Positions 12,892 through 29,065 of a stretch of DNA of 64,000 bases are shown piece after piece. Under the pieces are notes generated by a model. It was given only the letters and a program-made list of their open reading frames with translations, made no database searches and was not told the origin of the DNA. Origin of the DNA: Trichosphaerium sp. ATCC 40318 (Eukaryota > Protista > Tubulinea). The position numbers were made by a program, and so were the translations under genes. The DNA lies in assembly GCA_038496445.1 (NCBI GenBank), contig JALMLS010000376.1:496001-560000 (forward strand), written 5' to 3'. Positions within the stretch are counted from its first letter, which is position 1. Every line of letters starts with the position of its first letter.

Positions 12892-14170
12892 ATGGCGTCT
12901 ATCTTCTCAGATAACGAGACAACATTATTGTTTGATCAGAGTGAACTACGTAGGCATAAACGAATTAAACGCGCGTCTGTATGAACAACAAACCGATATT
13001 TTAGGTAATGTTCCTAACGGAAACCTTTAGTACATACCTGACGAGGAGAGAAATAGCCCACAGATAGAGTATGTAAAAAGGCTTCGTAAATTAAGGTTCA
13101 GAAGGCACGTGACACTAGTAAACATTGTATTAGCATAGAATTTTGTAAAAATTATCCATACGTGACCGATGGTTTCGTTCCCAAATGAATTATTCTTTCT
13201 TAAGATATGTTTTAGACAATGGAAAAGCGCTGGTGTCGTATTTGTGCTTCTTGGTACTTTTTTATTCTATTCCCGTACGTTGCAGTTGGCGAGAATTTCG
13301 TCATCAGTTTTGATTGTATTTTTGGCTAACGTTTTGTTTTGTCATTATACCAAAGCCAATTGAAGCTTCGATTAGCGATGCGCAGTACGCAAACAGTACG
13401 TAATATTAGCTTCCTGTTATTTTGACACGTGATAGCGTCCATAAGTGATTTTGGTGGTCCTGAAGTTGATGTTGATCTTTCGGTACTTGTTATTATATGA
13501 ATCCTTTCTAGCTGACAAAGAATGTAGTTTACGTTGTCTATTTTGAACAGAAACTATATATCTGTAGTTCTAGAAAACGCAAATTTTGAAATGGAGTATC
13601 GCGATGTAGACTTTTCTATCACACTTGGCCGTGTATGTTTTTTTTACTGTTGGTTTTTTGTTTGTCTTATGTTTTCATGTAGATCAGCCTACCTAAACCG
13701 ACGCTATTATCGAAAGGACAAGTGGTAATTTTAAACTATTTTTATTTGGCAATGCTATTAATGTGTTCCATACATTCTGGGATCAGCAATCAAATCTGCT
13801 TTATTACAAAAGTTTTCTTTTTTTTTTCTTTTTTTTTTTTGTTTTGATTTGTTCTTCTTAGCGTATTCCAATATTTTTTCGTTTCTCAAGTAAGAACTTG
13901 GCCATTCCTCCTGTAGAATACTTGAGGATAGTAAAAAAGTTTACAAAAGATGTATTGGCTGGCATTATACCCGTTCTTTTTAGAGGCAAACTTCATGTTA
14001 GAGTTTTTGGCATCAGGCCAACAGTAAGCTTTGAAGCGCCTGTAGAATTCAAACTTGGTGATGTTTTAAATACTAACATACCGCCAAACCCTATAATAGG
14101 AGGGAAAAATTTTGGGGCACAGCAATCGATTCTTAACATGTTAGTTGGTGCAGTGCAGAATGTTAACTGA
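12892..14170 (+). CDS. Single-pass membrane protein with LEA_2-like beta-sandwich (tentative)
   Basis: Basic N-terminus, hydrophobic segment (AGVVFVLL...), then LNRNYISVVLENANFEMEY and FRGKLHVRVFG; some exon boundaries uncertain. Confidence 0.5.
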
Positions 14171-14566: not shown

Positions 14567-17500
14567 CTAATTACGGGAATCCAGTTCTACACCATCAAAT
14601 CTCTTTGCGCTTCCTTGTTTTGGTGATCCTTTTGTCTTCAGTATAATGACACCCACAACAATAGCTATCAAAGCGAGCACAACAAGTACAGCAACGGCCA
14701 CTACACCATAGAACGCTGGAGACTTCATGAAAGAAGAATTATTGCTGTCATTGTCCGTCACAGATGACTTTCCTCCTCTGGCTGCTAGACCATCCTAATA
14801 ACATTGTTAGGTACTTTAAATGTTATGATTAGGCTTCTTACGTTTGTTATGAACTTGTAGAGGACAGATAATGAATGGACATCTCCGTTGATAGCTGTAA
14901 CATCAAGTGAAACTTCAATGATGTACTCAGTATTTTTATCTACATTAGCATCTGACAAATTAAACGTCATGTAGAGTTCTGAGATGAACTCATTCAATTG
15001 CCAATTGGTTGAAACACCTGTTTGGCTATTTGGTGTTGACATTTTACGAGAATAACTGGTTTGTACTTTCTTACAACCCTAAACACTCATTAGATTTTGA
15101 AGAAAAAAATAAAGTTCCAAGAAACTAGCTGCCAATAAAAAAGAAGCCGTACGGTGGTTAGGTAATCTTCCTTGAAATCGCATAACCAAGCATCTGTAGC
15201 TTCCATGTCTATAATACTTGAAAACAAACTTGAGCTCTCGAATACAATTCTTGCTTCTTCGTCAGGTGCATAAGTAGTAGCAGTTGCACCTAAGGCAAAA
15301 ATAAGAAGTTATTTCCTCTGGAGCAAAAAATTCATTTGATTGTACGCACTTGAATATACACCTCTTGCTCTTGCTTCGATTTGTGGATCTTCTATAACTT
15401 CAGGTTCGAAAGTAGGTATCTTAAACGAGTGTAACCCGACATAGTGTTGAACCTTCTAAACGTTCAATGTGAGCAAGAAGAAAAAAGTATGAAATAAAAA
15501 TTTGTCGCGTACGTTCGAATTGCCACAGAAGTGAAGCGTGAACTTCGTTTCTACTAAACGGAATGGATCACAATCGTGGTCGAGTGTGAGAGTCATTTCC
15601 CATTCTTGATAACACAGTGGTAATCTGGTATCCTTTAAGCAGTCATCACAAATATTCTTTTTGACATTTTTAAGAGTTCCAATTTCCTTTCCGTTTAACG
15701 TTGGATCTTCTCCTGTGAGACTAAAAAATAAGGCTATTAGTAACGTGGAATAACCAAGTGCAAATAGGCACTCTATTTGGTTGAAGAACGTACTATTGTT
15801 CGAGTCCAGTGGAACCAAGAATAGTTGTTCTGAACTGTACTGTGTACATGTTCACTCCTGCATCATATGATATATCTTTTGTTTCGAAACTAACACTAGC
15901 TCCACTTGATAGTAAACCTGCGCTGTAGACCACTAATGGATTTTTCTTATCTGGTTCGAATAGATTGATGTTCTAAGTAAGCAAAAAAAGTAAGCACAAG
16001 AAAAAAAGGTAGGAATTTGTTATTAATGTATGGTACCTCCACGTGATTCTCTGAGTTTCCGTTTCCATCTACCATAATCGTGCGTACAAATAAGGTGTAC
16101 AATGATCCTTTTTGACCCTTATCGTTGGTTGCAGGCTTAAAACAATGTAAGACAAAGTAGCTACTTTATGAGCTAAACTGTACCTTGGATTTAGGCCCGC
16201 ATTTGTTAAGCATGTTTTGAATATCTCCAACACCATACAAAACGATATCTTCGCAGTCGCTTGTGTAATATTGCTTAAATTCTACACCGCAGTCTGTATC
16301 TCCAGCAACGACAGAAGCCTGGATGTTGTAAGTTAAAAAAACCAGGAAATACAAAGTTAAATTATTGAACATACGTATAAAGTACGCTTATCTATGGCTG
16401 GCGCGTGTACTACAACAAGAAGGTCCTTCAAACTAGTGTATTCATCCACAGTGATTATTGAATCACGTTTTGTAACTTGTGGAAGGTCTTTACACTCTAA
16501 AAAAACAGTTAGAAGATGATTGCTCGAAAAAACCCAAATTATCTCACGAACCTGAAGACAATTGTAGCTCATCTCTTGTAGGTACTTCTTCACATTTACG
16601 CTCGCCATGAGGGAAAATAGGAACGTGTCCTGGGTTCTCAAAAGGTGTACACTTGAGTGTCCTACATTGATCTAATCCTTCTGTAAAGTTTCCTCGTATC
16701 CTAAGAAAATTATGAGAAAACAAAAACAAAATATCGGAGCTTAAACAAGCGTACGCGACACAAAATCTTTCAACGACGTTGTTGACACACTGTCCATCAA
16801 GTGTACAACAAGCACCTGGATATCTTGGAGGTTGGAATGTTGGGCACACTCTAACAGGGAACCCATCAAGGGTTTGACATATCTCTGGTGATGTTCTGAA
16901 ACAAGCATGAAGGTATGTGACAGCACACCAAACTATTAAAAGTAAATACTTGCGATATTGGCACGTGTTTATCAACGTACTATCAGGATCATCAATAGTA
17001 ACAAGAAGTGGAGTTGGAGAAGTAAGCGAAGGCAAACGTGTACTCATAGGTCCTCCTGGGCCATTGTTTTCAAGGTCGTTGTAGGTACCAACATAATAAA
17101 TATCGCCAGAAATACCTGTTGTATCAATGGTGAAGCGTTCAAAGGCTGCATTGATGTCAACGTAGCGTCCTATTAAATAAAGTTAGTTTCGTGTTTCTGA
17201 TACTCTTTTATAGATACTTACCATGACACTGAACTTGCTGTGGAAGCATGATTGGACATACAAGCTGATTTATCATGGAGTTAAAAGGCATAAATTTTCC
17301 TTGTGATATTGTTATTTCAAAAATTCCAATAGAGGCTTCGTTCTCTCCAGAATCGTCTAAGAGATAATACAATAAGTTATTGAGAATACAAAAATGGTAC
17401 TAGATAAAGTCTTGATGCTATTGCGTACCTATTATAGCAGCATCAAAGTCAATGCTGGTTGTGCCAAATGGATAGTGGAAAGTTTTCGTTGGATCTAATT

Positions 17501-20500
17501 GATCACCTTCACAAGTATCGTTTGTTAAAGGATGATTATCTAACCAGCATATATCACCAGATTCGCTGACATATTTTCCTCCTTGTACAGGCTAAACAAA
17601 AATATATTCGTAAGTTTTAAGTACGTCGTAAATCAAATTGTTACAAAAAAATTGAAATGTTTCTTCCAAAAACGTGACGTGACAGGTGGTTTGAAATGAT
17701 CACGTACAACATTGGCGATGCTGACAGCTGGTGGATCATTTATTGGGTTAACACGAATGATATAAGCCTGTTAAAGAACAAGTTAGTAAAAAATACCAAT
17801 CACAATGTGAAGGTAGGAACTTACCATTTTTACGCCTCCTCTGTGGTCGCGAACTTCAATAGTAAGCTGTTCATCACCATTCCAGTTTTCATCAGGCTCA
17901 TAGCGAACTTTTGACAGTGCTTTGTTAAGTCCAGCAAATGCTGAGTTTGCTCCAAAAGAAGTGAAGTTTCCAACAGTTGTTGGTGTATTAAGGTTCATTA
18001 ATAGCCAAACGTTTGTTCCTTGTCCTGGTATTTCTTCACCGATTTCGGCTGTGACACGGTTTATATTAAGCTCAGGTAAGAAGAGAAGTCCGTTATCGAC
18101 TGACAGAGATACTTCCATGTAGTCTAAATTTAATGTCAAATGTAAGGCACTTTTTTGTTGTTCTCTCGATCTTGTAATGGCGTACCATCATAGTCTACAT
18201 CATGGAAAGTCCATCCATCGTTGATAGTGACCTGAGTATCTTCATCAAGTGTAGCAATAATATCACAATTCTGGGTAGGAGCTAAAGGGAGAAAATTAGT
18301 TTAGTTTATCGATTGTTAAGCGTACCACTCTCGTTTAATGCATTTTGGTTTGGACATTGTATTGGTCCGATTGGATCCAATACTAGATTACTGTCGTCCA
18401 TAGTAGGAACATCATTGACGTTCTTGATTTTCAAGCTCAAATGACCAGTAAAAGAAAGACCGGCAACTGGACCAGCACCGTAATGACCGTTATCTTCAAG
18501 TCTTATATCAGCACCGAATGTTCCAGATGAATTCTCATCAGGGACAAATGATACTGTTTCCATCAATTCGTTCAATCTCAGGAGAGTTCCTTCCGCAGTA
18601 AAACCTAGCAAAGAAGTTAAAACCAGTTTAGCTGAGGTTGTGTAGGTACCAATGTTGTTTGCTAGTTGTGTAGTTGTTACACCAGCAACATCAACCCAAG
18701 TGAAGTGTCCGTTGACACGGAAGTTAGGAACTATAGCGTTGAAGTATGCTGCGAGTAAAGGATCTATGATATACGTAGCAATATTATTATCAGGGTTGAT
18801 GATAGTCGTTGAGAGCTTAGTCCTAAACTCACAGTTAACTTTTTCTTTACCAACTTTTTGTATGCACTTCTTTTCGTACCTATCAATTGTAACTCTGAAT
18901 TGTCTTGAGTCATCATCACTAGGTACATCTACGTCGCTGAAAGATGAATCAGTACGTGTGTGAATAGGCTATGGGTGTACCGCAAGAGTATTGGGAATGC
19001 TGTTTTAGGTGGATATAGTTCTAATGTTTGATCTTCTAAACCAGTAACAGTATTTGGTGAAATGACAAGAGGTTCATCATTTACAGGATCAACACTTATC
19101 GCCATGGTCTATTCAACATTAGATCTCATTAACCATGCACTAGAATTCTATTTTCACATGTTTCTAAAATCCTTACCATATTTACAGAAGCTGGTACAGG
19201 ATTGTCGCTACCAGGATCAAATGATGTACCTAAACAATGCAAAGTTAGTTCCTGAGTCATCGAGTTTTGCAAGAAATTTTTCTTCAAAATAACACGTGCC
19301 TGTCACGAGAATCTGAGTGTCTCCATGGAAATTTCTTGGAGGTACGATAACAAGTGGTTGAGTTGGAGTCGTGAACGGAGCCCAAACAAAGTCAGTTTGA
19401 ATGTTGGTATCAGATATAACATCAGGGCCAGGGAGAGCTCGCTTTTTGTTTCCGCTAGTTCCTCCTTTTGATGCGAATTGTACGTCAAAGACATCAAGCA
19501 CAGGATCATATTGGGCTGGTTTAATACGCCAACCTTTAGGTACATTGCTAATTTGGATGCCTAAGATCTCTTCTGGGTCAACAGCTTGTAAGTCAATATC
19601 TAATAAGATATCTGTGTCTTCCAAGCCCGTGGAAACTCCAACAGTCAAGTCAGGTGTTTGCGAAATACATTGGATAATAACCTAGTATAAATATTAGTTG
19701 ATACCACGTGAGAAATCAATAAATATTTACCTTGATCTCTTGGAACATCATTGGGTTTCCATCCTTGTCAAGAGCTTCTACGACTATTGTATCACGTCCA
19801 CAGAAGTTACCTAAATATAAGTCAACAAAAGCTCCAAGTACACTTAGATAGGTTGGCGTACCTGGATCGTAAGTCAAAGTACCAACGTCAGCAGAAATGC
19901 TTGCAACCTTGCCAACAACTCTGATTTGTCCGGCGAAGTATGTTACTGCAACATCAGCGCTTGGTACACCGTTCCATGTGAATGAAGCGTGATTACAGTA
20001 TAGGCGAAGTGTCATTTCTGATCCTCCAGCTGGTGGATGATTGTAACGAACTTGTACACCGACTGGCACAGGGTTAAAGTCGTAACCACGAACAAAGGCC
20101 GGAATTAAGATAACAATACGATCAACAAATGGATCAGAGAAAACGACTTGAGTTAAAGTGTTCACATCAGCTCCTGTAAGATGTGTAAGTATTTAAAGAG
20201 TGATAAGTGGTTTCTTTCAAACGTACCATTGCTCAAACTAGTTGTAACGGCTTCATCTGTACTGTAAAGAATACGTTTATTCATAGGTACTTCATCGAAT
20301 CCAGAGTTCTCATTATCGCTGAAAGTGAAGCGGATAGTTACTTCAGAAGTTCTGTTTAAAGTTTAGTTAGAATGTACAAAATCAATAAACGATTACCCTG
20401 GAGTAGCGCCACTGTCAAACTTGTAGACCATGCCGAAAATGTTGTTGTTAATATTGGCAAGAGTTCCCTTTGTCAAATGAGACTTTGTGATACATTGTAA

Positions 20501-23500
20501 AGAGTGGTACGTACATCGAGTATCAAGTGGTATGGTGTTACATATTGGTAAGCAATCGTGCCATCTGGTTCAAAAACTAACTCTCCGATACCCTCTAATA
20601 CATTGATATCGAGTGTAACCCATCCCTACATTCAAACAGTTACTCATCAAGAAACATTAGTTGACACTACTTACATCGAAAGCATCAACATCCTCAGCGA
20701 AAGATGTAAAGAAACGAGCGAAAAACTCATTTCCTGTAGTGGACACTGTAGTTGGTACAGTCAAACTTGGAGGATCATTTACCTAGTAATAAAGTAAGCT
20801 CACTAGATAGATTGTATGAGGGCTGAGTAGTATTCATACAGGGAATATAAGGATTGGCTGAACTTTTGTTGTGAAAGCGCATTTATCCTCCGGATGTCCT
20901 GCCATAGGTTCCTGAAACAAACGTGTAAGCAAACAAATGATGTATATATGCGCTTGATACCTCCTTCTCTTCAGCAATACCAACAAGTAGGAAGCAGAAT
21001 TCTCCCTCAGAGTTAGGCGCTGGGTCAAATTGAAGATCAGGAATCAAGTTAGCAGGAATGTTGCTAAAGAGACAGTTATTCGGTTGTTAGTAGTGGTGGA
21101 GTTGTACGAGGTGTCCGCAATTGGTTGTCCATTTGCAAGGAATCGCGCCTAACAAGAATTAAGGTAAGCTATTTAAAGCTCGGTATTGCGTACGCCTTGG
21201 TCAAGCTTTAGTGGACATAGGCACAAGTTATCGTGACACGATAGAGGTGCTGGAGGAGCTGCAGTAGGACCAACACCACCGTTATTGAATGGATCGGAAC
21301 AAGGAATATCACCTGCAACATCGTCTTTGACTTCAGATGACAGAAGTTTTCTAGAAATTTAATTAGCCTTCAGAGAAAGTTGTTTTTCGTGCCTGTTAAA
21401 CATTGTCACACGTCTAAAGAATATAGGTATTGACTCGAAATGCAAGTAAGTGGATTCTAAACCAACACCAATACTGACTTCTCCTTGAATGACATTTCTA
21501 GTATTTATGTTACCAGTGACACTGGCGAGTGTGCACTCAAGCCCATTGACATATGCTTTTGTATCATCCGACACAGTATCACCTAAACAGCTAGTTAAAT
21601 TTTGGTTTCTTACCTGTGTTCGCGAGTACCATTTACAGTGACTGCTACATGATGCCAGTTATTTGGTGTTATGGTGTTACCGCCAGGAACGCGCTAGAAA
21701 AAGTTCTGTTAGAATTCAGATAAGGGATTTGAAGAAAATGCAATACCCAGATTAATCTTGTTGCTTGTACTGCTCCTGCGTATGCACCGCTTAATTGATA
21801 CAAGAAAAGGTTACTTCCACCAGAAGATACACCAAATACCTTAGCATAGGGTTTTAGCAAACGACAAGAAGGTATAAAGTACCCATCCAGAGGTAAGGCC
21901 AGTTGATGGATTAGGTCCTAGCTTGTGAGCTATTGTATACGTAGCAAAAAATTGTCTTTTGCCTGGAGCAACAGGACGGAATAATGCTGTTAGCGAGAAG
22001 TCACCATTGTAGTTTATGGCGTTAGATCCAGGAGCATGAAACAAATTGGATGACTGCGTTAACAAACTATAAAATATAATGAGTGGTGGTTATTATTCAA
22101 TCTCAGCTGAGCATTATCCGTACCTGACATAGTTGTCATCTTCAGTTGTACTCAGAGAGTATCCAGTTGCTGGAGGTTCCATATGGTGTTCTAAGCCTGA
22201 AATATCCTATACAGCACGTTAATATTAGGTGTGTGGTGCACTTGTGACGCAATGTTACCTTTCCTGGCTTAAACAAATCTTCGAAATCCCACCATCCTAT
22301 GATACAGCAATCTCTTGGATTTACAGGAGATCCACTAGCCGCTGGTAGTTGACATGTACAAAGCTCTGCTTTTTTCTCATTGTATACTTCTTGCATATTC
22401 GTATCCCACAATGCAACATGCCATACACGTACATCATCAATAAAACCATCAAAATCAAGCAGATCGCCTACCTTTAAAAAAAAAACCATATTAGTATCTT
22501 GTTGAAAAATATGTTTGTAGTACTTTAACGACATCTGTATCCACAGTATTGAATGGTCCAACTTGTACTCCAGGAAGGAAAAAGATAAATCTGTTGACGT
22601 TTTGACCGTCAAAGTAAAAGACAGGAGAAACATTACCTTTTTTTAGAAAGTCAATAATCAAACAAACTTGAAAAAAAAACCCAAAAAACTGTACCGTAAG
22701 TAGCTGAAAATGCGAATTGATGCCAATCAGCCAGACCAGCTATTGTAAGTCCTTCTGTCAGTAAATTTTCGGATACCCAAGAGTCTCCTTGATCTTTGAA
22801 TCTTGAAAGAAGTTCAGCGATTTACTTTAGAAGTAACAAAAACTTACCGAAGTCTAACGTAGTTTGTAAGACCTATACGTTGTACAGAAATACTGAAAGT
22901 CCATCTCATTATTGGTTGTGTTATACTTGGTGAGGTGCGCTCGATTAGAGTATACTCTTGCTCAGTAGATGTAAAGGTTGGCGGAACACTAAATTTGATT
23001 CGAAGAGATGCTGATGTATCACCCTAGCACATGAAGCGTAAGCGGAAAATACAATCAAAAAAAAAAGGTTAGTTTTGGGGTGTACGTACCTCGAAGTTCA
23101 AAGAATTGAGGTTGTTTATCTTTGCTGTCACTCTAGAACGCAAGAACTTAAAGGCGCCACCTGAACCTTCATTTGGTGCCCATTGACCGCCTAGAATCTG
23201 CAAATGCGCTCCGAATCCGGATGAATCTTCAGCAAAAGAACCAAAAGTCTCATCCATCTTCCACCACGCTCTAAGAATATCATCACAGCAAGCATCACCA
23301 ATACCGTCACCATTGATATCTTCTTGTAAAGGATTCGATACAAAAGGACAATTATCTAATGGCACGTGAGAATCACGTGGAAATAATTTGAAAAGGCATA
23401 AAACCAAGCGTACCACAGCGATCTCCTACGCCATCTTCATCAGTATCAGGTTCATCACAGTTACAAATGCCAAGACTAAGGATTTCTGAGTCATCGATAT

Positions 23501-26500
23501 CTACTAGTCTTGCTTCTACGTTGAGATCAAGAGGTCCGTTATCTTCCCATCCCATAGATCTTTTGACGACTACTTTAGGTGGATCTGCCACGGGGAACAT
23601 CTCTACTTTAACCTCATTGGGTGCAGATTCAACTTTACCGTCGCTACTTGCAATAACAAAAAACCTACAATGAACTTCAGCACCAACTCCAAAAAAAAAA
23701 AAAAAAGAAAACTCCACTAGATTTAAAACATACGTATCGTCTATGTCAGTATCTGGTTGTGGGTTGTAGGAAAACAAGCCCTTGTTTACATCTTCAAGAG
23801 ATACTATACCTTGACCAGAAGAGTGTATAAGGAAGAATGCTTTTTCATCGCCAATGGTATTAATGTCAACACCTTAAACGCCTTTGTTAGCTTCCTTCTC
23901 AAATCTCTTTTTCTTACCTGATACTGGGTCGTCTTCTCTAACTTGTATTGTTTGGTCTTGAGGCAATGGGAATTCCCTCGGTTCTTCTTCGCAAGTATCA
24001 AGCAAGTCGAATGTAATCTTATCCATAGACCATTTTCCGATAACTTTATCTACAGCCGCTAACCAGTCAAGACCAATGAAAACTATCTTTAGTCTCAATT
24101 CAAAGATGAAACTAACAGTGACAGTGATAGGTGTAAGCTCTAGCTTTATATCAAAGCAAACATCCAGCGGAAATTGACCAAAGTCCAATGTGGTTGTAGT
24201 TGGCAACTAGTACAATGTTAGTTTGTTTCCATGGTGAACAAAGTTCTTTTGTTCACGAAAGTTCTAAATGGTACCTTAACTGCCAGTAGTTCGAGTTTTA
24301 TTTTAATACCAGCACGAACAATAAAGAAAGAGATGGCTGCTTTTACAGTTCCCTCGACAAGAAATTTTGGAGTAACTGTACCAGTAGCTGTAAGTTCAAA
24401 TATGCATACTCCAACGTCGAAATCAACACCATATACAAACTTTGCTCCAACTTCAAAGTCAAGCGCAATACCAGCAAAAATAGGTACTGAGAAAGAGAAC
24501 TCGAATATTTTAACATCATTTTTGAGTTCGTCCACAGAAGAGAATGCAGGCAGACAAAGGCCTGTTGGTAACTTAAGACCTACAACAGGTTTTAGCCCAA
24601 AAAAAAATAAAACCAAAAAAAAAAAATTGTGCCTAAAATATCGTCTCGTTTAGATACTCCACTTCGCTTGTCATCATCCTTGAACATGTGATGAATGCCT
24701 CCATTGGCTCCTGTAAACTCTCCTTTGATTAAGTCATAGCCCAAGAATATCGCAAAGTAGTCATCTTTGAAATCATCAAAGTTCAATAATGTTCGTTTGT
24801 CATCACATTTAGCAAAAGCATCAAAATTTTTGCCAATAAATTCACACCATTCACCCTCGCCTGTAGGTATAGGTCAAAAACACAACATTTCTAAAAATTT
24901 ACGTACCTAGTGAGCTATCCAAGCTTACACGCATCCCAGATATCCAGGAGGAAAACCAGACACTAACAGAACTTAATTACTTTCAATGCTATTTTTTTTT
25001 TTGGCATACGGTTTGACAGCGCAACAACAGTCTTCATAGGCTTTCCACCAATCATCAGTTAAGCTAGTAAATTGCTTAGTCTATAAATAAAATATCACGT
25101 GACGTACTCTTTAATCAACCCACCAAAATCTGGATCACTGCCTGGAGCTAGCCCAGCGAGAGCCAAAAGATACTTGATTTTAACTGCACGAATGAGTTGA
25201 TCTTTAATACGTTGATCTTTAAGTGCATCAATAGGTATGATATCCCATGCCGTTTCGATAGCTTGTAGCTCAGATTCATAGGCTTCTTTGGCCTAAAAAT
25301 ACGTTTAATCGGACCGACTAGAACACAAGAAGAAAGAAGCGTACGGTTTCGTATGGGTCGTGATAGTTTCCATCATCATTTTTCTCTTGAAGCTTGCGCT
25401 GTATCTCATGTCGTACACAATTGTTAGGTCCTTCTGACCCATCATCGTATAGTTTCTCACAAGCACATTTCGCGTTTTCAATGTACTCAGGAGGGAGCCA
25501 ATCTGCAAGACCTGGTTCATCATAGTAGTCGCAATCAGTACGTGAAGCGCCATTAGGAAGTTCGCAATTCTTAAGCTCCTCGAGGTTGGCCAAATCTTTA
25601 AGAAAGTTCCAATCATCATTTGCAGCAATTGTCAACTGTGCCGCTCTGATAACTGCACACTCTTCTGGAGATGCAGTGCATCTATGAAGACCACACTAAA
25701 GCATATGGTTAACAAACAATCTTCTTTCAATAAAGTAACAAACACGTGTTACGCACGTTAAAAGCTAACCCTTCTGGGCAAGTGATTTCAGGTCCAGAGA
25801 ATCCAATCTCAAATTCAGTGGATAAAGTATCACGTTTTTTGGTGTCGGAAAGAGATTTCTTATGAGAACCTGCTATACGCTTATTTCCAGGCGTTCCTTG
25901 TGTTATACCCATATCTATACCGATACGAAGAATAGTCAATTTGTGGCCGAAAACCCACGCGTGTGCAGCAAACTCATCGTTTATCTTAGCAGATGCTTCA
26001 GGTAACCCGTTAAGAGGCCATTCCACTGAGAATATATTATCAAATACTACAATTATCGTTAGTGTGAAAACGCGAATAAAACAGGAAATAATCAACGTAC
26101 TTATTTCGTAGTCTGCACCAAATTTCTGGTCTCCAAATTTATCTCCTTTTCTTGAAGTATCACCAAGTTTCAGCTTGAACTTGTAACCACCAAGTAACTC
26201 ATCAAGTACTTCATTAATAATATCACGTTTCTGAGTTTGTAAAGCAATGATTCTTTCATCAGAAAAGTGAGATATAGTTATGTTAGCTTCATTGCGCAGA
26301 CTTAAACAGAGTTAGAAAGAATTCAACGATATGTTGCCAAGTATTCACGCACGTTTCAAGGTATTTATATACTTGCATGTTTTCGGCAGCGGCAGTGTTG
26401 AGTGTGACCTTAGCAAGCTTTACTAGTTCTTCATTTGTTTCAACTGTAATAGTGAAGAGTATCGTATCAATATCTTGAATGGACAACTTCTCATAATGTT

Positions 26501-29065
26501 GTGTTGCTAGAACCAATCCAGCTTTTCTAAAAAAAAGTAAGTAATACTTGGATAAAACTCTAAAATGATTGTACCTGACTTCATAGTTAGGGTTAACAAC
26601 GTCTTCGTAGACATTGAATAGACGCTCTCTTACAACACCTTCATAGTCTGGTATATCTCTCAACTTGTTGAGTGCGTACATAGCAGTTACTTGTACTTTT
26701 GGGTGATAGTGCGTTGTAAGCTTGTTTAAGAACTTGTAAACATGTCTGTTATGGGTGTTACCCAAAGAACGAATCCAGACGATTAAATCCTTAGGATCTT
26801 CAGTTTGTTCTGCTCTACTCATTAAAGTCTTGATATAAGTCAAAATATCTCTTGATGACTCCTTATCCGAGGATTCAAGTGCAAGGTATCTAGTAAAGCA
26901 AACAAGTTAGACGTTTTAAAACAATAATGTAGGGAAAAAAAAAAGGAAAAGCTCCGACTAACCTGTGGATCATACTACCCAATGTCAACGGTAGTTGCTT
27001 ATCAAGTGCGGAGTTGAACTTCTTTGGAATGTTATCATGAAGAATCATGAGTCCTTCTATACGTGGGTACGGTTGTAATGCCAAAGAATGCAAAGCTGAC
27101 ATTTTCAAATTTGCCGAATTGTGGTCTCCTTTATAAACGTTCCAGAGTATGTGAAATACATCATCATGATCGACATTGGAGATAGCGTTCAATGCAAAAG
27201 AAAACGTTCTATCAGAACACTTTGTTTGGCATGATTCAACAATCAGAGGCATAACAAGTTGAGGGTGATCTGAAAGATGATCTTTGATTTTATCAAAAGC
27301 TCTAGCGTTGGATGTAAGGTTATCCTCTTTTGCAATTTCTTCTGAAAGCACAATAACAGCATCAGCAATCTTTTGAAGTGTCTCTCGTTCTTCTGCAGAT
27401 CTCTTGTTTAAAGTAGGTTCTCTGTGAAGCATTCATTAGATGAAGGCGGTTACAGAGTATTAAAGGCGTGAGGAGGAGAACGTACTGTGTGTTGTGCGAG
27501 TAGAATAAGTTAGTCTCTTGAGATTCACCAACACTACGTTTGTGATGCTTCACAACGTCGCTCCACGAATTAAAGCTTACAGAACGTTTTCCAGGCTGAT
27601 CACGGACACTATGAAGACGCATTGAACCTATCAACCTGTAAATATGTAACATTGGTGATAGTATATAGTACCTGTAGAGGTTGCTAGTACTGGAGAAATA
27701 TGATCTTGTCCAGGCACTGATATATGGTGTCTCTCTTTGTACGCGCTTGAAGCAATAATTCGTGATACCAGATCAACCTTATGGTTACCTTGAGATTCAA
27801 TGTTAGAAAATATGACTGATTGAATTCAATTCAAAAAAAAAAAACACGTGCTATTGTGGTTGCTGACATATTTTGGTTTGCCAGTTTTATATTGCTAGCA
27901 TAGAGGTTAGCGAGGGAAGTCCAAAAACACCTGGGTAAACTGAACATACCTCGTTGTAAACGTGGCGGGTTTTGAGAGGTCTGTATTTACATTTATCCAA
28001 GTCCTTTTCTCTGTGGATAGCTACTGAGCGCTTACCAGACGTCGCCACAGTTTCGCGAAGGCGGTATTTTGTTTGACAATGACCTAAACGGAAAAAAGTG
28101 TTAGAAATAGTTCCTTATTGCTACCAATACGCGTACCAAGCACGTCCTTATCATGATGGACTGTCTCATGCCCTTCAGAGTTAAGAGCACGTTTTGAAGC
28201 CGTATAGGTATCTTCATGAAGCAAGCGAGTTTGCAAAGAGCTAAAGGAGCGATAAACATCCAAAACAAACAAAAAAATAATAATGAATGTATCACACGTG
28301 TTATTGATTACCGCGGTAAAAAAAACTTGAAAGCTGAGAGATGAAACGTACCTTAGTAAACCGCGCTTTATGTTAAGAATTTCTGGGACTTCATCTTTGT
28401 CGGCCAGTATTTTTTCGATTTGGCCATTACTAGAGAGCGTAAAGTACAATTTACGTTCGCTTAAGGATTTGTCCAGGTCGTGCGACGCATCCTCTTGTAC
28501 TTCCATCTTTCCTGTTATTCTATTGAAATGTCTAGGGTTGTATGTTAGACCAACGGACGAGGCTCAAAACTGAAGTGGGGCATGTAGTTGGAGTTTAGAA
28601 AAAAATGCAGCTCATCGAATGTAAACCCCATACCGTATACTTCCATGTGTAATAGATAACTGACAAAAGTGATCATAATGGTCATCGACGTTTCGAGGTT
28701 CTGATCCGAGAACTATTACATCGGCAGTTATCTACCAAGAGCACATTAACGATCGATAAAGTTTGGTTGCTTCGTAAAAAAAATTATCTCAAAAAAAAAA
28801 ACACTTACAGCCATTTCGTTCATCTCATGGTTTTCTTGATTGTTCTCTTGAACTGTAATATGTCTCGACTCAAACTCATAGCGATATATCTTCCCAGTCT
28901 TGTAGTCAAGTTGCTGGGAAACAACCAAACTAGCGAAAGACAACAATACTGCCAGACGCAATAAAACTATATAAACGTTAGAACACCTCAAGCTATCGAA
29001 GGTTGTAGACCACTGCGGGTGCAAGTTATGGCAATGGTATAGTCCTATCGTTTGTACTTACACAT
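14567..29065 (-). CDS. Giant multi-exon type I membrane protein: signal peptide, vitellogenin/MTP-like large lipid transfer module, TSP3 repeat, 2 LamG domains, cadherin/Ig-like repeats, TM helix
   Basis: ATG 29065 (4-nt exon) splices to MFLLRLAVLLSFASLVVSQQLDYKTGKIYRYEF; DVLGHCQTKY...[67 protein letters not shown] and KNVNDVP repeats; TM FYGVVAVAVLVVLALIAIVVGVIIL; every junction checked kept the frame. Confidence 0.8.

Follow-up and report, generated by a model that had tools for sequence, protein, structure and literature searches.

Large lipid transfer proteins (LLTPs) share a large lipid transfer (LLT) module, which consists of an N-sheet, an alpha-helical subdomain and a cavity of A and C sheets; they are treated as animal proteins for circulatory lipid transport, and their emergence has been tied to multicellularity (PMC12214520, PMC1783640). 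Vitellogenin in addition binds membranes and pathogen-associated molecular patterns, and takes part in opsonisation for phagocytosis (PMC12214520). The described members (vitellogenin, apoB, apolipophorin II/I and the MTP large subunit) are soluble, being either secreted or lumenal in the endoplasmic reticulum. A second point of reference is the SibA-E family of Dictyostelium, type I adhesion receptors with a VWA head, bacterial-type repeats, a Cys-rich part, a transmembrane (TM) segment and a short tail. Here we describe a gene of the amoebozoan Trichosphaerium sp. ATCC 40318, located in a window of 64,000 nucleotides (contig JALMLS010000376.1, positions 496,001 to 560,000; all coordinates below count from the first base of this window), for which an original prediction, made from the sequence alone, had proposed a membrane-tethered vitellogenin- or MTP-like protein fused to adhesion modules. 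Our analysis confirms a real, expressed and divergent LLTP-like protein, in a new architecture and a new taxon.

The gene occupies the minus strand, where dense coding is spread over many short stop-free stretches (Table 1). A dynamic-programming model joins these stretches into one spliced path without stops, from the ATG to the TAG, with a coding sequence of 10,971 nt in 64 exons and 63 introns. The model allowed GT..AG introns, and combined a splice position weight matrix trained on RNA-confirmed introns with a codon log-odds score; for exons 1-8 (the first ~1.6 kb) and some very small exons it is an approximation. The modelled introns are 43-121 nt long (median 53 nt) and the median exon is 146 nt; the intron style of the gene comprises GTAC-type donors, a CTAAC-like branch site and TAG acceptors. 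Alternative splice models with long introns were ruled out by the RNA joints. The one continuous spliced reading frame of the original prediction is therefore borne out, by the stop-free 64-exon path together with the RNA-confirmed introns, and the motifs that it quoted were all found at the positions given for them.

We utilized Pfam profiles, exon by exon, to assign the domains of the protein; the exons are short, and most matches consequently fall below the family cut-offs. Three exons of the N-terminal part match Vitellogenin_N (PF01347), collinear with the profile and summing to ~58 bits, and one of the three (exon 10) scores above the Pfam gathering score; the middle of the profile (~185-455) was unmatched in this exon-wise search. 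That three separate exon queries reach, in the proper order, the same family out of 24,736 goes far beyond what chance would give, and Vitellogenin_N was absent from the Pfam matches of ~45 downstream exon queries, which served as an internal control. The module starts with LDYKTGKIYRYEF at 28872-28910. Within the match to profile positions 141-185, the two cysteines of HCQTKY...DLDKC stand 27 residues apart, and knowledge of the family suggests that they are the conserved disulfide of the LLTP N-sheet. Further on, IRSLGN is found at 26757-26774, and the AlphaFold2 (AF2) model of exon 9 (26965-27420) contains eight helices, with a predicted local distance difference test score (pLDDT) of 69. 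The sequence thus supports placing the N-terminal part in the Vitellogenin_N (LLT N-terminal) family. The LLT hallmarks claimed for this part stand on the three collinear matches, one of them above its cut-off; of the two profiles by which the claim was to be checked, Vitellogenin_N was found and DUF1943 gave no match, both in exon-wise searches.

RNA contigs were aligned to 20950-26949, a stretch that begins at the best Vitellogenin_N exon and ends past the LamG-like region. The contigs come from runs X2, X3 (recorded as an RNA-Seq library) and X4, which represent three studies, and are at most 1,044 nt long. Seventeen introns within 20950-26962 are confirmed by spliced contigs of these runs, after alignment shifts were resolved. 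The confirmed joints have CT..AC ends on the plus strand, which are GT..AG on the minus strand, with one exception: intron 24580-24632 is a GC-AG intron of 53 nt (GCACAA...TTGTAG), supported by a 1,044-nt spliced contig through its exon pieces 24483-24578 and 24632-24859, and the other 16 are GT-AG. Several contigs give continuity: X4 record 13 (1,044 nt) spans 24483-25829 across six introns, X2 record 6 joins 25552-25695, 25757-26046 and 26101-26300 and extends beyond, and X3 record 12 connects 26390 to 26816, so that contig pieces link 26816 down to 24483; RNA depth continues down to 20950, and 28 of the 30 bins have depth in X2. Transcription and splicing in one orientation, with overlapping pieces, thus extend over the LLT-like part, the Cys-rich insert, the exons of amphipathic beta type and both the TSP3 and the LamG-like exons. 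A single transcript is carried by overlapping pieces in the middle third of the gene, and we infer it elsewhere, because the contigs are short and the RNA alignment was limited to 20950-26949.

The contigs also differ from the window at scattered single bases between 20950 and 26949 (17 are listed, mostly transitions, e.g., at 21443, 22375, 24811, and 25823), one of which, a T>C difference at 22469, caused a joint to be misplaced in the alignment. They look more like variation in strain or allele among the cultures sampled than like editing. A fourth run, X1, had the highest share of sampled words (0.56) and gave zero contigs on 20950-26949; because filtering can lose contigs by chance, it neither supports nor contradicts the model.

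Downstream of the solenoid the protein continues into exons that are candidates for the lipid-cavity sheets. Exons 19, 20, and 13 rank top in the protein for amphipathic beta moment: exon 19 has the highest value of all exons (1.43), followed by exon 20 (1.11), and exon 13 has a beta moment of 1.02, exceeding its helix moment. Exon 19 and exon 20 form the candidate A-sheet, where FSVPIFAGIALDFEVGAKF is found at 24437-24493, and between the candidate C- and A-sheets lies a Cys-rich insert without any Pfam match. The amphipathic sheets interrupted by a Cys-rich insert that had been proposed here are accordingly seen in the moments and in the insert itself, and Pfam and structural support for the sheets did not materialize.

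The remaining modules are of types found in adhesion proteins. The calcium-binding motif DxDxDGxxDxxDxC occurs twice in the thrombospondin type 3 (TSP3) repeats. An intron splits the repeat and thereby holds its PF02412 match below the cut-off; motif and match together uphold the proposed TSP3 calcium-binding repeat. Two short pieces match Laminin_G_3, at 22259-22471 (profile 130-145, E 0.11) and 21631-21693 (profile 70-89, E 0.0033), and their position in two separate regions fits two LamG-like domains. Partial matches to Cadherin_4 (E 0.0064 and 0.0094), Big_9 (E 0.0022) and Cadherin_5 (E 0.0055) point to cadherin/Ig-like repeats, together with V/INDxP junction motifs at 20768-20782, 19070-19084, 18405-18419, and 17729-17743. 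For the predicted LamG and cadherin/Ig-like domains, the matches are all partial and below the family cut-offs. Next come Cys-rich regions and beta regions without an assigned family; the membrane-proximal region, 14842-17591, matched no Pfam family. All these modules share one reading path with the Vitellogenin_N-like part, and in the middle third RNA pieces connect the LLT part with the TSP3 and the LamG-like modules.

Two hydrophobic segments are found in the model, a signal peptide and a C-terminal TM helix, and because they are the only ones the predicted topology is type I, which puts the LLT-like head at the greatest distance from the membrane. In the favoured model the first coding exon consists of the ATG and one base, and the first intron (29061-28967, 95 nt) has a GTAAGT donor, a CTAAC branch site and a TATAG acceptor; this intron places the signal peptide MFLLRLAVLLSFASLVVSQQ directly before the module start LDYKTGKIYRYEF (LDYK...). 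Two alternative GTAC donors 4 nt downstream (at 29057) keep the signal peptide, whose hydrophobic core LAVLLSFASLVV has a Kyte-Doolittle value of 2.72. At the other end, the TM helix (14639-14716) reaches a 19-residue Kyte-Doolittle maximum of 3.56 and is followed by a basic tail of 23 aa (14570-14638), both as originally predicted. The shortness of the tail suggests anchoring rather than signalling.

Comparison with animal LLTPs revealed several shared features: the signal peptide directly before the module, Vitellogenin_N/LPD_N matches in both the N-sheet and the helical part, the two-cysteine motif in the N-sheet, and an alpha-solenoid followed by amphipathic beta regions; like MTP, the amoeba protein is also without a VWD domain. 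It differs from them in that the module is followed by ~2,300 aa of TSP3, LamG-like and cadherin-like modules, that a large Cys-rich insert stands in the sheet region, that no DUF1943, DUF1081 or VWD match was found, and that its divergence is beyond the reach of phmmer; unlike all described LLTPs, it is encoded by an amoebozoan. Known LLTPs are soluble, whereas the amoeba protein is predicted to be anchored by its C-terminal TM helix; solubility, which is a property of all described LLTPs rather than a defining feature of the fold, would thus not extend to it. In layout the protein resembles Dictyostelium SibA-E (a head, bacterial-type repeats, a Cys-rich membrane-proximal part, a single TM helix and a short tail), but its head is LLT-like, not VWA, and its tail, KTKGSPKQGSAKRFDGVELDSRN, contains no NPxY motif. 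Its stalk resembles bacterial-type cadherin-like and Big_9 adhesins and TSP3 and LamG modules in the partial Pfam matches, the V/INDxP motifs and the calcium motif DxDxDGxGDxC; here, in contrast, such modules make up a stalk that is encoded by a eukaryotic gene rich in introns, and the exon-wise matches are below cut-offs.

Table 1. Features of the LLTP-like gene in the window, listed from the start codon to the stop codon, followed by the introns confirmed by RNA.
Feature	Position	Strand	Evidence or details
Whole gene	14567..29065	minus	ATG 29063-29065, stop TAG 14567-14569; ~64 exons, ~3,656 aa
Start codon, probable first intron, signal peptide	28911..29065	minus	read from sequence
Vitellogenin_N-like region: beta-rich N-sheet part in many small exons, then alpha-solenoid (exons 9-11)	26353..28910	minus	Pfam
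Vitellogenin_N (PF01347) match	28354-28530	minus	profile 64-114, E 0.0036, 16.4 bits
Two-cysteine motif DVLG/HCQTKY...REKDLDKC	27989-28146	minus	split by 53-nt intron 28084-28136
Vitellogenin_N (PF01347) match	27890-28114	minus	profile 141-185, E 0.032, 13.3 bits
Vitellogenin_N (PF01347) match, exon 10	26577-26888	minus	profile 456-543, E 6.8e-7, 28.7 bits, cut-off 24
Candidate C-sheet: two exons after the solenoid, partly amphipathic beta	25757..26300	minus	X2 record 6, beta moment
Cys-rich insert: 5 exons, 13 Cys, ~290 aa	24633..25695	minus	flanking introns all RNA-confirmed
Candidate A-sheet: two exons, strongly amphipathic beta strands	23918..24579	minus	beta moment
Thrombospondin type 3 calcium-binding repeats	23288..23456	minus	Pfam TSP_3 (PF02412) E 0.0038
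Two LamG-like (Laminin_G_3 / ConA-like) jelly-roll regions	21402..23287	minus	partial Pfam matches, six RNA-confirmed introns
Bacterial-type cadherin/Ig-like repeats	17645..20782	minus	weak Pfam matches, junction motifs
Membrane-proximal region, including Cys-rich exons 16553-16930	14842..17591	minus	coding score, introns 47-74 nt
Last exon: Ser/Asn-rich stalk, TM helix, tail, stop	14567..14794	minus	Kyte-Doolittle
RNA-confirmed intron	26890-26962	minus	loose contig end reading into exon 9
RNA-confirmed introns	26047-26100, 26301-26352, 26527-26574	minus	spliced contigs
RNA-confirmed introns	24861-24906, 24963-25009, 25064-25107, 25293-25344, 25696-25756	minus	spliced contigs
RNA-confirmed GC-AG intron	24580-24632	minus	spliced contigs
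RNA-confirmed introns	22207-22258, 22472-22523	minus	spliced contigs
RNA-confirmed introns	21064-21107, 21149-21193, 21583-21629, 21694-21746, 21840-21882	minus	spliced contigs

The nearest coding neighbour is a convergent gene on the plus strand, whose last coding stretch is 13862-14167; its coding signal ends at ~14167, which puts its 3′ end ~400 nt from the stop codon described here. On the other side, no stretch scores as coding on either strand from 29066 to ~32100, and these ~3 kb upstream of the gene stand out within the window as unusually empty. Intergenic gaps at this locus are therefore at least 400 nt. We found no paralogue in the window by tblastn with all exons; exons 47 and 49 show weak self-similarity.

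We also searched for relatives outside the window. Exhaustive phmmer with exons 10-11 (26292-26906, minus strand) against 1.84 billion representatives (the protein itself not included) gave no credible relative, its lone match, a low-complexity coiled-coil protein, being judged spurious; no related loci were found in metagenome contigs (with exon 10 and exons 46-47) or in viral contigs (with exon 9). These blanks say little on distant kin, because the queries were single exons, the divergence is extreme and animal LLTPs were not reached either; no relative that could root the family came out of these searches. A literature search returned no report on LLTPs in Amoebozoa or other protists, a blank that is not proof of there being none. 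Automatic database annotation may already label some protist proteins as containing a vitellogenin domain. Vitellogenin, lipoprotein and lipid transfer go unmentioned in the Trichosphaerium genome paper and its supplements (PMC10521059). The same paper gives a GC content of 37.69%, a mean intron of 75 bp and a mean exon of 154 bp for the draft genome (PMC10521059), and the window has a GC content of ~38%. Animal contamination was considered and rejected: there is no close animal homologue, and both the intron style and the GC content match the amoeba genome.

Several results weigh against a single gene for an LLTP-like receptor. The RNA alignment covered 20950-26949 of the 14567-29065 span. 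The strongest Vitellogenin_N match falls in a HEAT-like stretch, where HEAT_2 scores 24 bits (below the HEAT_2 cut-off); the ESM-Atlas feature neighbours of exons 9 and 10 are HEAT-repeat clusters only, and Foldseek with the AF2 model of exon 9 returned generic ARM/HEAT folds only, at E values of at least 0.05, an uninformative outcome for a single-exon query. A sequence search of the PDB (phmmer) with exons 9 and 10 found no LLTP, and because of this we regard the N-terminal domain, judged by its sequence, as very divergent from LLTPs. The cavity-forming C and A sheets have no exon-wise Pfam match (neither DUF1943 nor the MTP lipid-binding domain), and the AF2 model of exon 19 alone has a pLDDT of 35, too low to be of use.

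The alternative that survives best, though we think it unlikely, is that the head descends from an LLT module without carrying lipid any longer, and serves a giant Sib-like amoebal adhesin only in adhesion or in recognising proteins or glycans. The unmatched cavity sheets would be expected if this were the case, as would the ~290-aa Cys-rich insert that interrupts the expected sheet region and the adhesion-type modules that make up the rest of the protein; however, exons 13, 19 and 20 carry long amphipathic beta strands of the kind expected of lipid-lining sheets, and a small cavity suffices for lipid transfer in MTP (PMC12214520). A clearly less probable alternative is that we have merged two genes or isoforms, one for a secreted LLT-like protein and one for a separate TM adhesin starting below ~20950. 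The limited range of the RNA alignment and the short contigs leave room for such a junction, and a flexible splice search may find open paths by chance, but the model contains no gap larger than 74 nt from 27421 to 14567 (against the intergenic gaps of at least 400 nt), the coding score is positive in every exon, a second signal peptide or hydrophobic start is absent from it, and the TSP3 and LamG-like parts are already joined to the LLT part by RNA. That the Vitellogenin_N matches arose by chance in a generic HEAT/ARM solenoid, with no LLT module at all, is a reading to which the HEAT_2 score on exon 10, the ESM-Atlas neighbours and the Foldseek folds would point; it is the least probable of all, given that the two N-sheet matches (profile 64-114 and 141-185) lie in other exons in the right order and spacing, that HEAT_2 stays below its own cut-off where Vitellogenin_N exceeds its own, that the domain directly follows the signal peptide as in LLTPs, and that Vitellogenin_N matches 0 of the ~45 other exon queries.

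Our preferred reading is one expressed gene of a marine amoeba that would encode a type I membrane protein of ~3,650 aa with a cleavable signal peptide. A divergent Vitellogenin_N-type module, with a beta N-sheet and then a two-layer alpha-solenoid, would be followed by amphipathic beta regions split by the Cys-rich insert, by the TSP3 repeats and by two putative LamG-like lectin folds; bacterial-type cadherin/Ig repeats and Cys-rich segments would make up the stalk, which would lead to the TM helix and a short basic cytoplasmic tail. A calcium-stiffened stalk would then carry the LLT-like head at its far end, displayed on the cell surface or, just as well, on the side of the phagosome membrane that faces the lumen, where the head may bind lipid or lipid-bearing surfaces such as prey membranes, lipopolysaccharide (LPS) or lipoteichoic acid, comparable to what soluble vitellogenins do, while the LamG-like domains may add glycan contacts. 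On balance, we lean towards a receptor of this kind, facing the surface or the phagosome, with an LLT-like head for lipid or lipid-bearing prey, a calcium-stiffened stalk and LamG-like glycan contacts. We hold more tentatively the combined proposal that the LLT module arose before animals or was taken up by the amoebozoan, and that it forms the distal head of a TM receptor by which lipids, or prey coated with lipid, are captured on the cell surface or within the phagosome. A surface location, the capture of lipid and an origin of LLTPs outside animals are what we infer from the arrangement of the protein.

If this reading is true, the protein would be the first LLTP with a membrane anchor and, coming from a unicellular organism, would run counter to the view that circulatory lipid transport in multicellular animals is what LLTPs arose for. 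An LLT N-terminal domain in a unicellular amoebozoan opens the origin of the module to test, as either ancient in Amorphea or acquired horizontally, and points to the module being put to a new use, in which it is tethered as the head of a receptor instead of serving as a soluble carrier. For a phagotrophic amoeba, it would be a candidate for the recognition of prey lipid or LPS, which may link it to the roles of vitellogenin in pattern recognition and as an opsonin.

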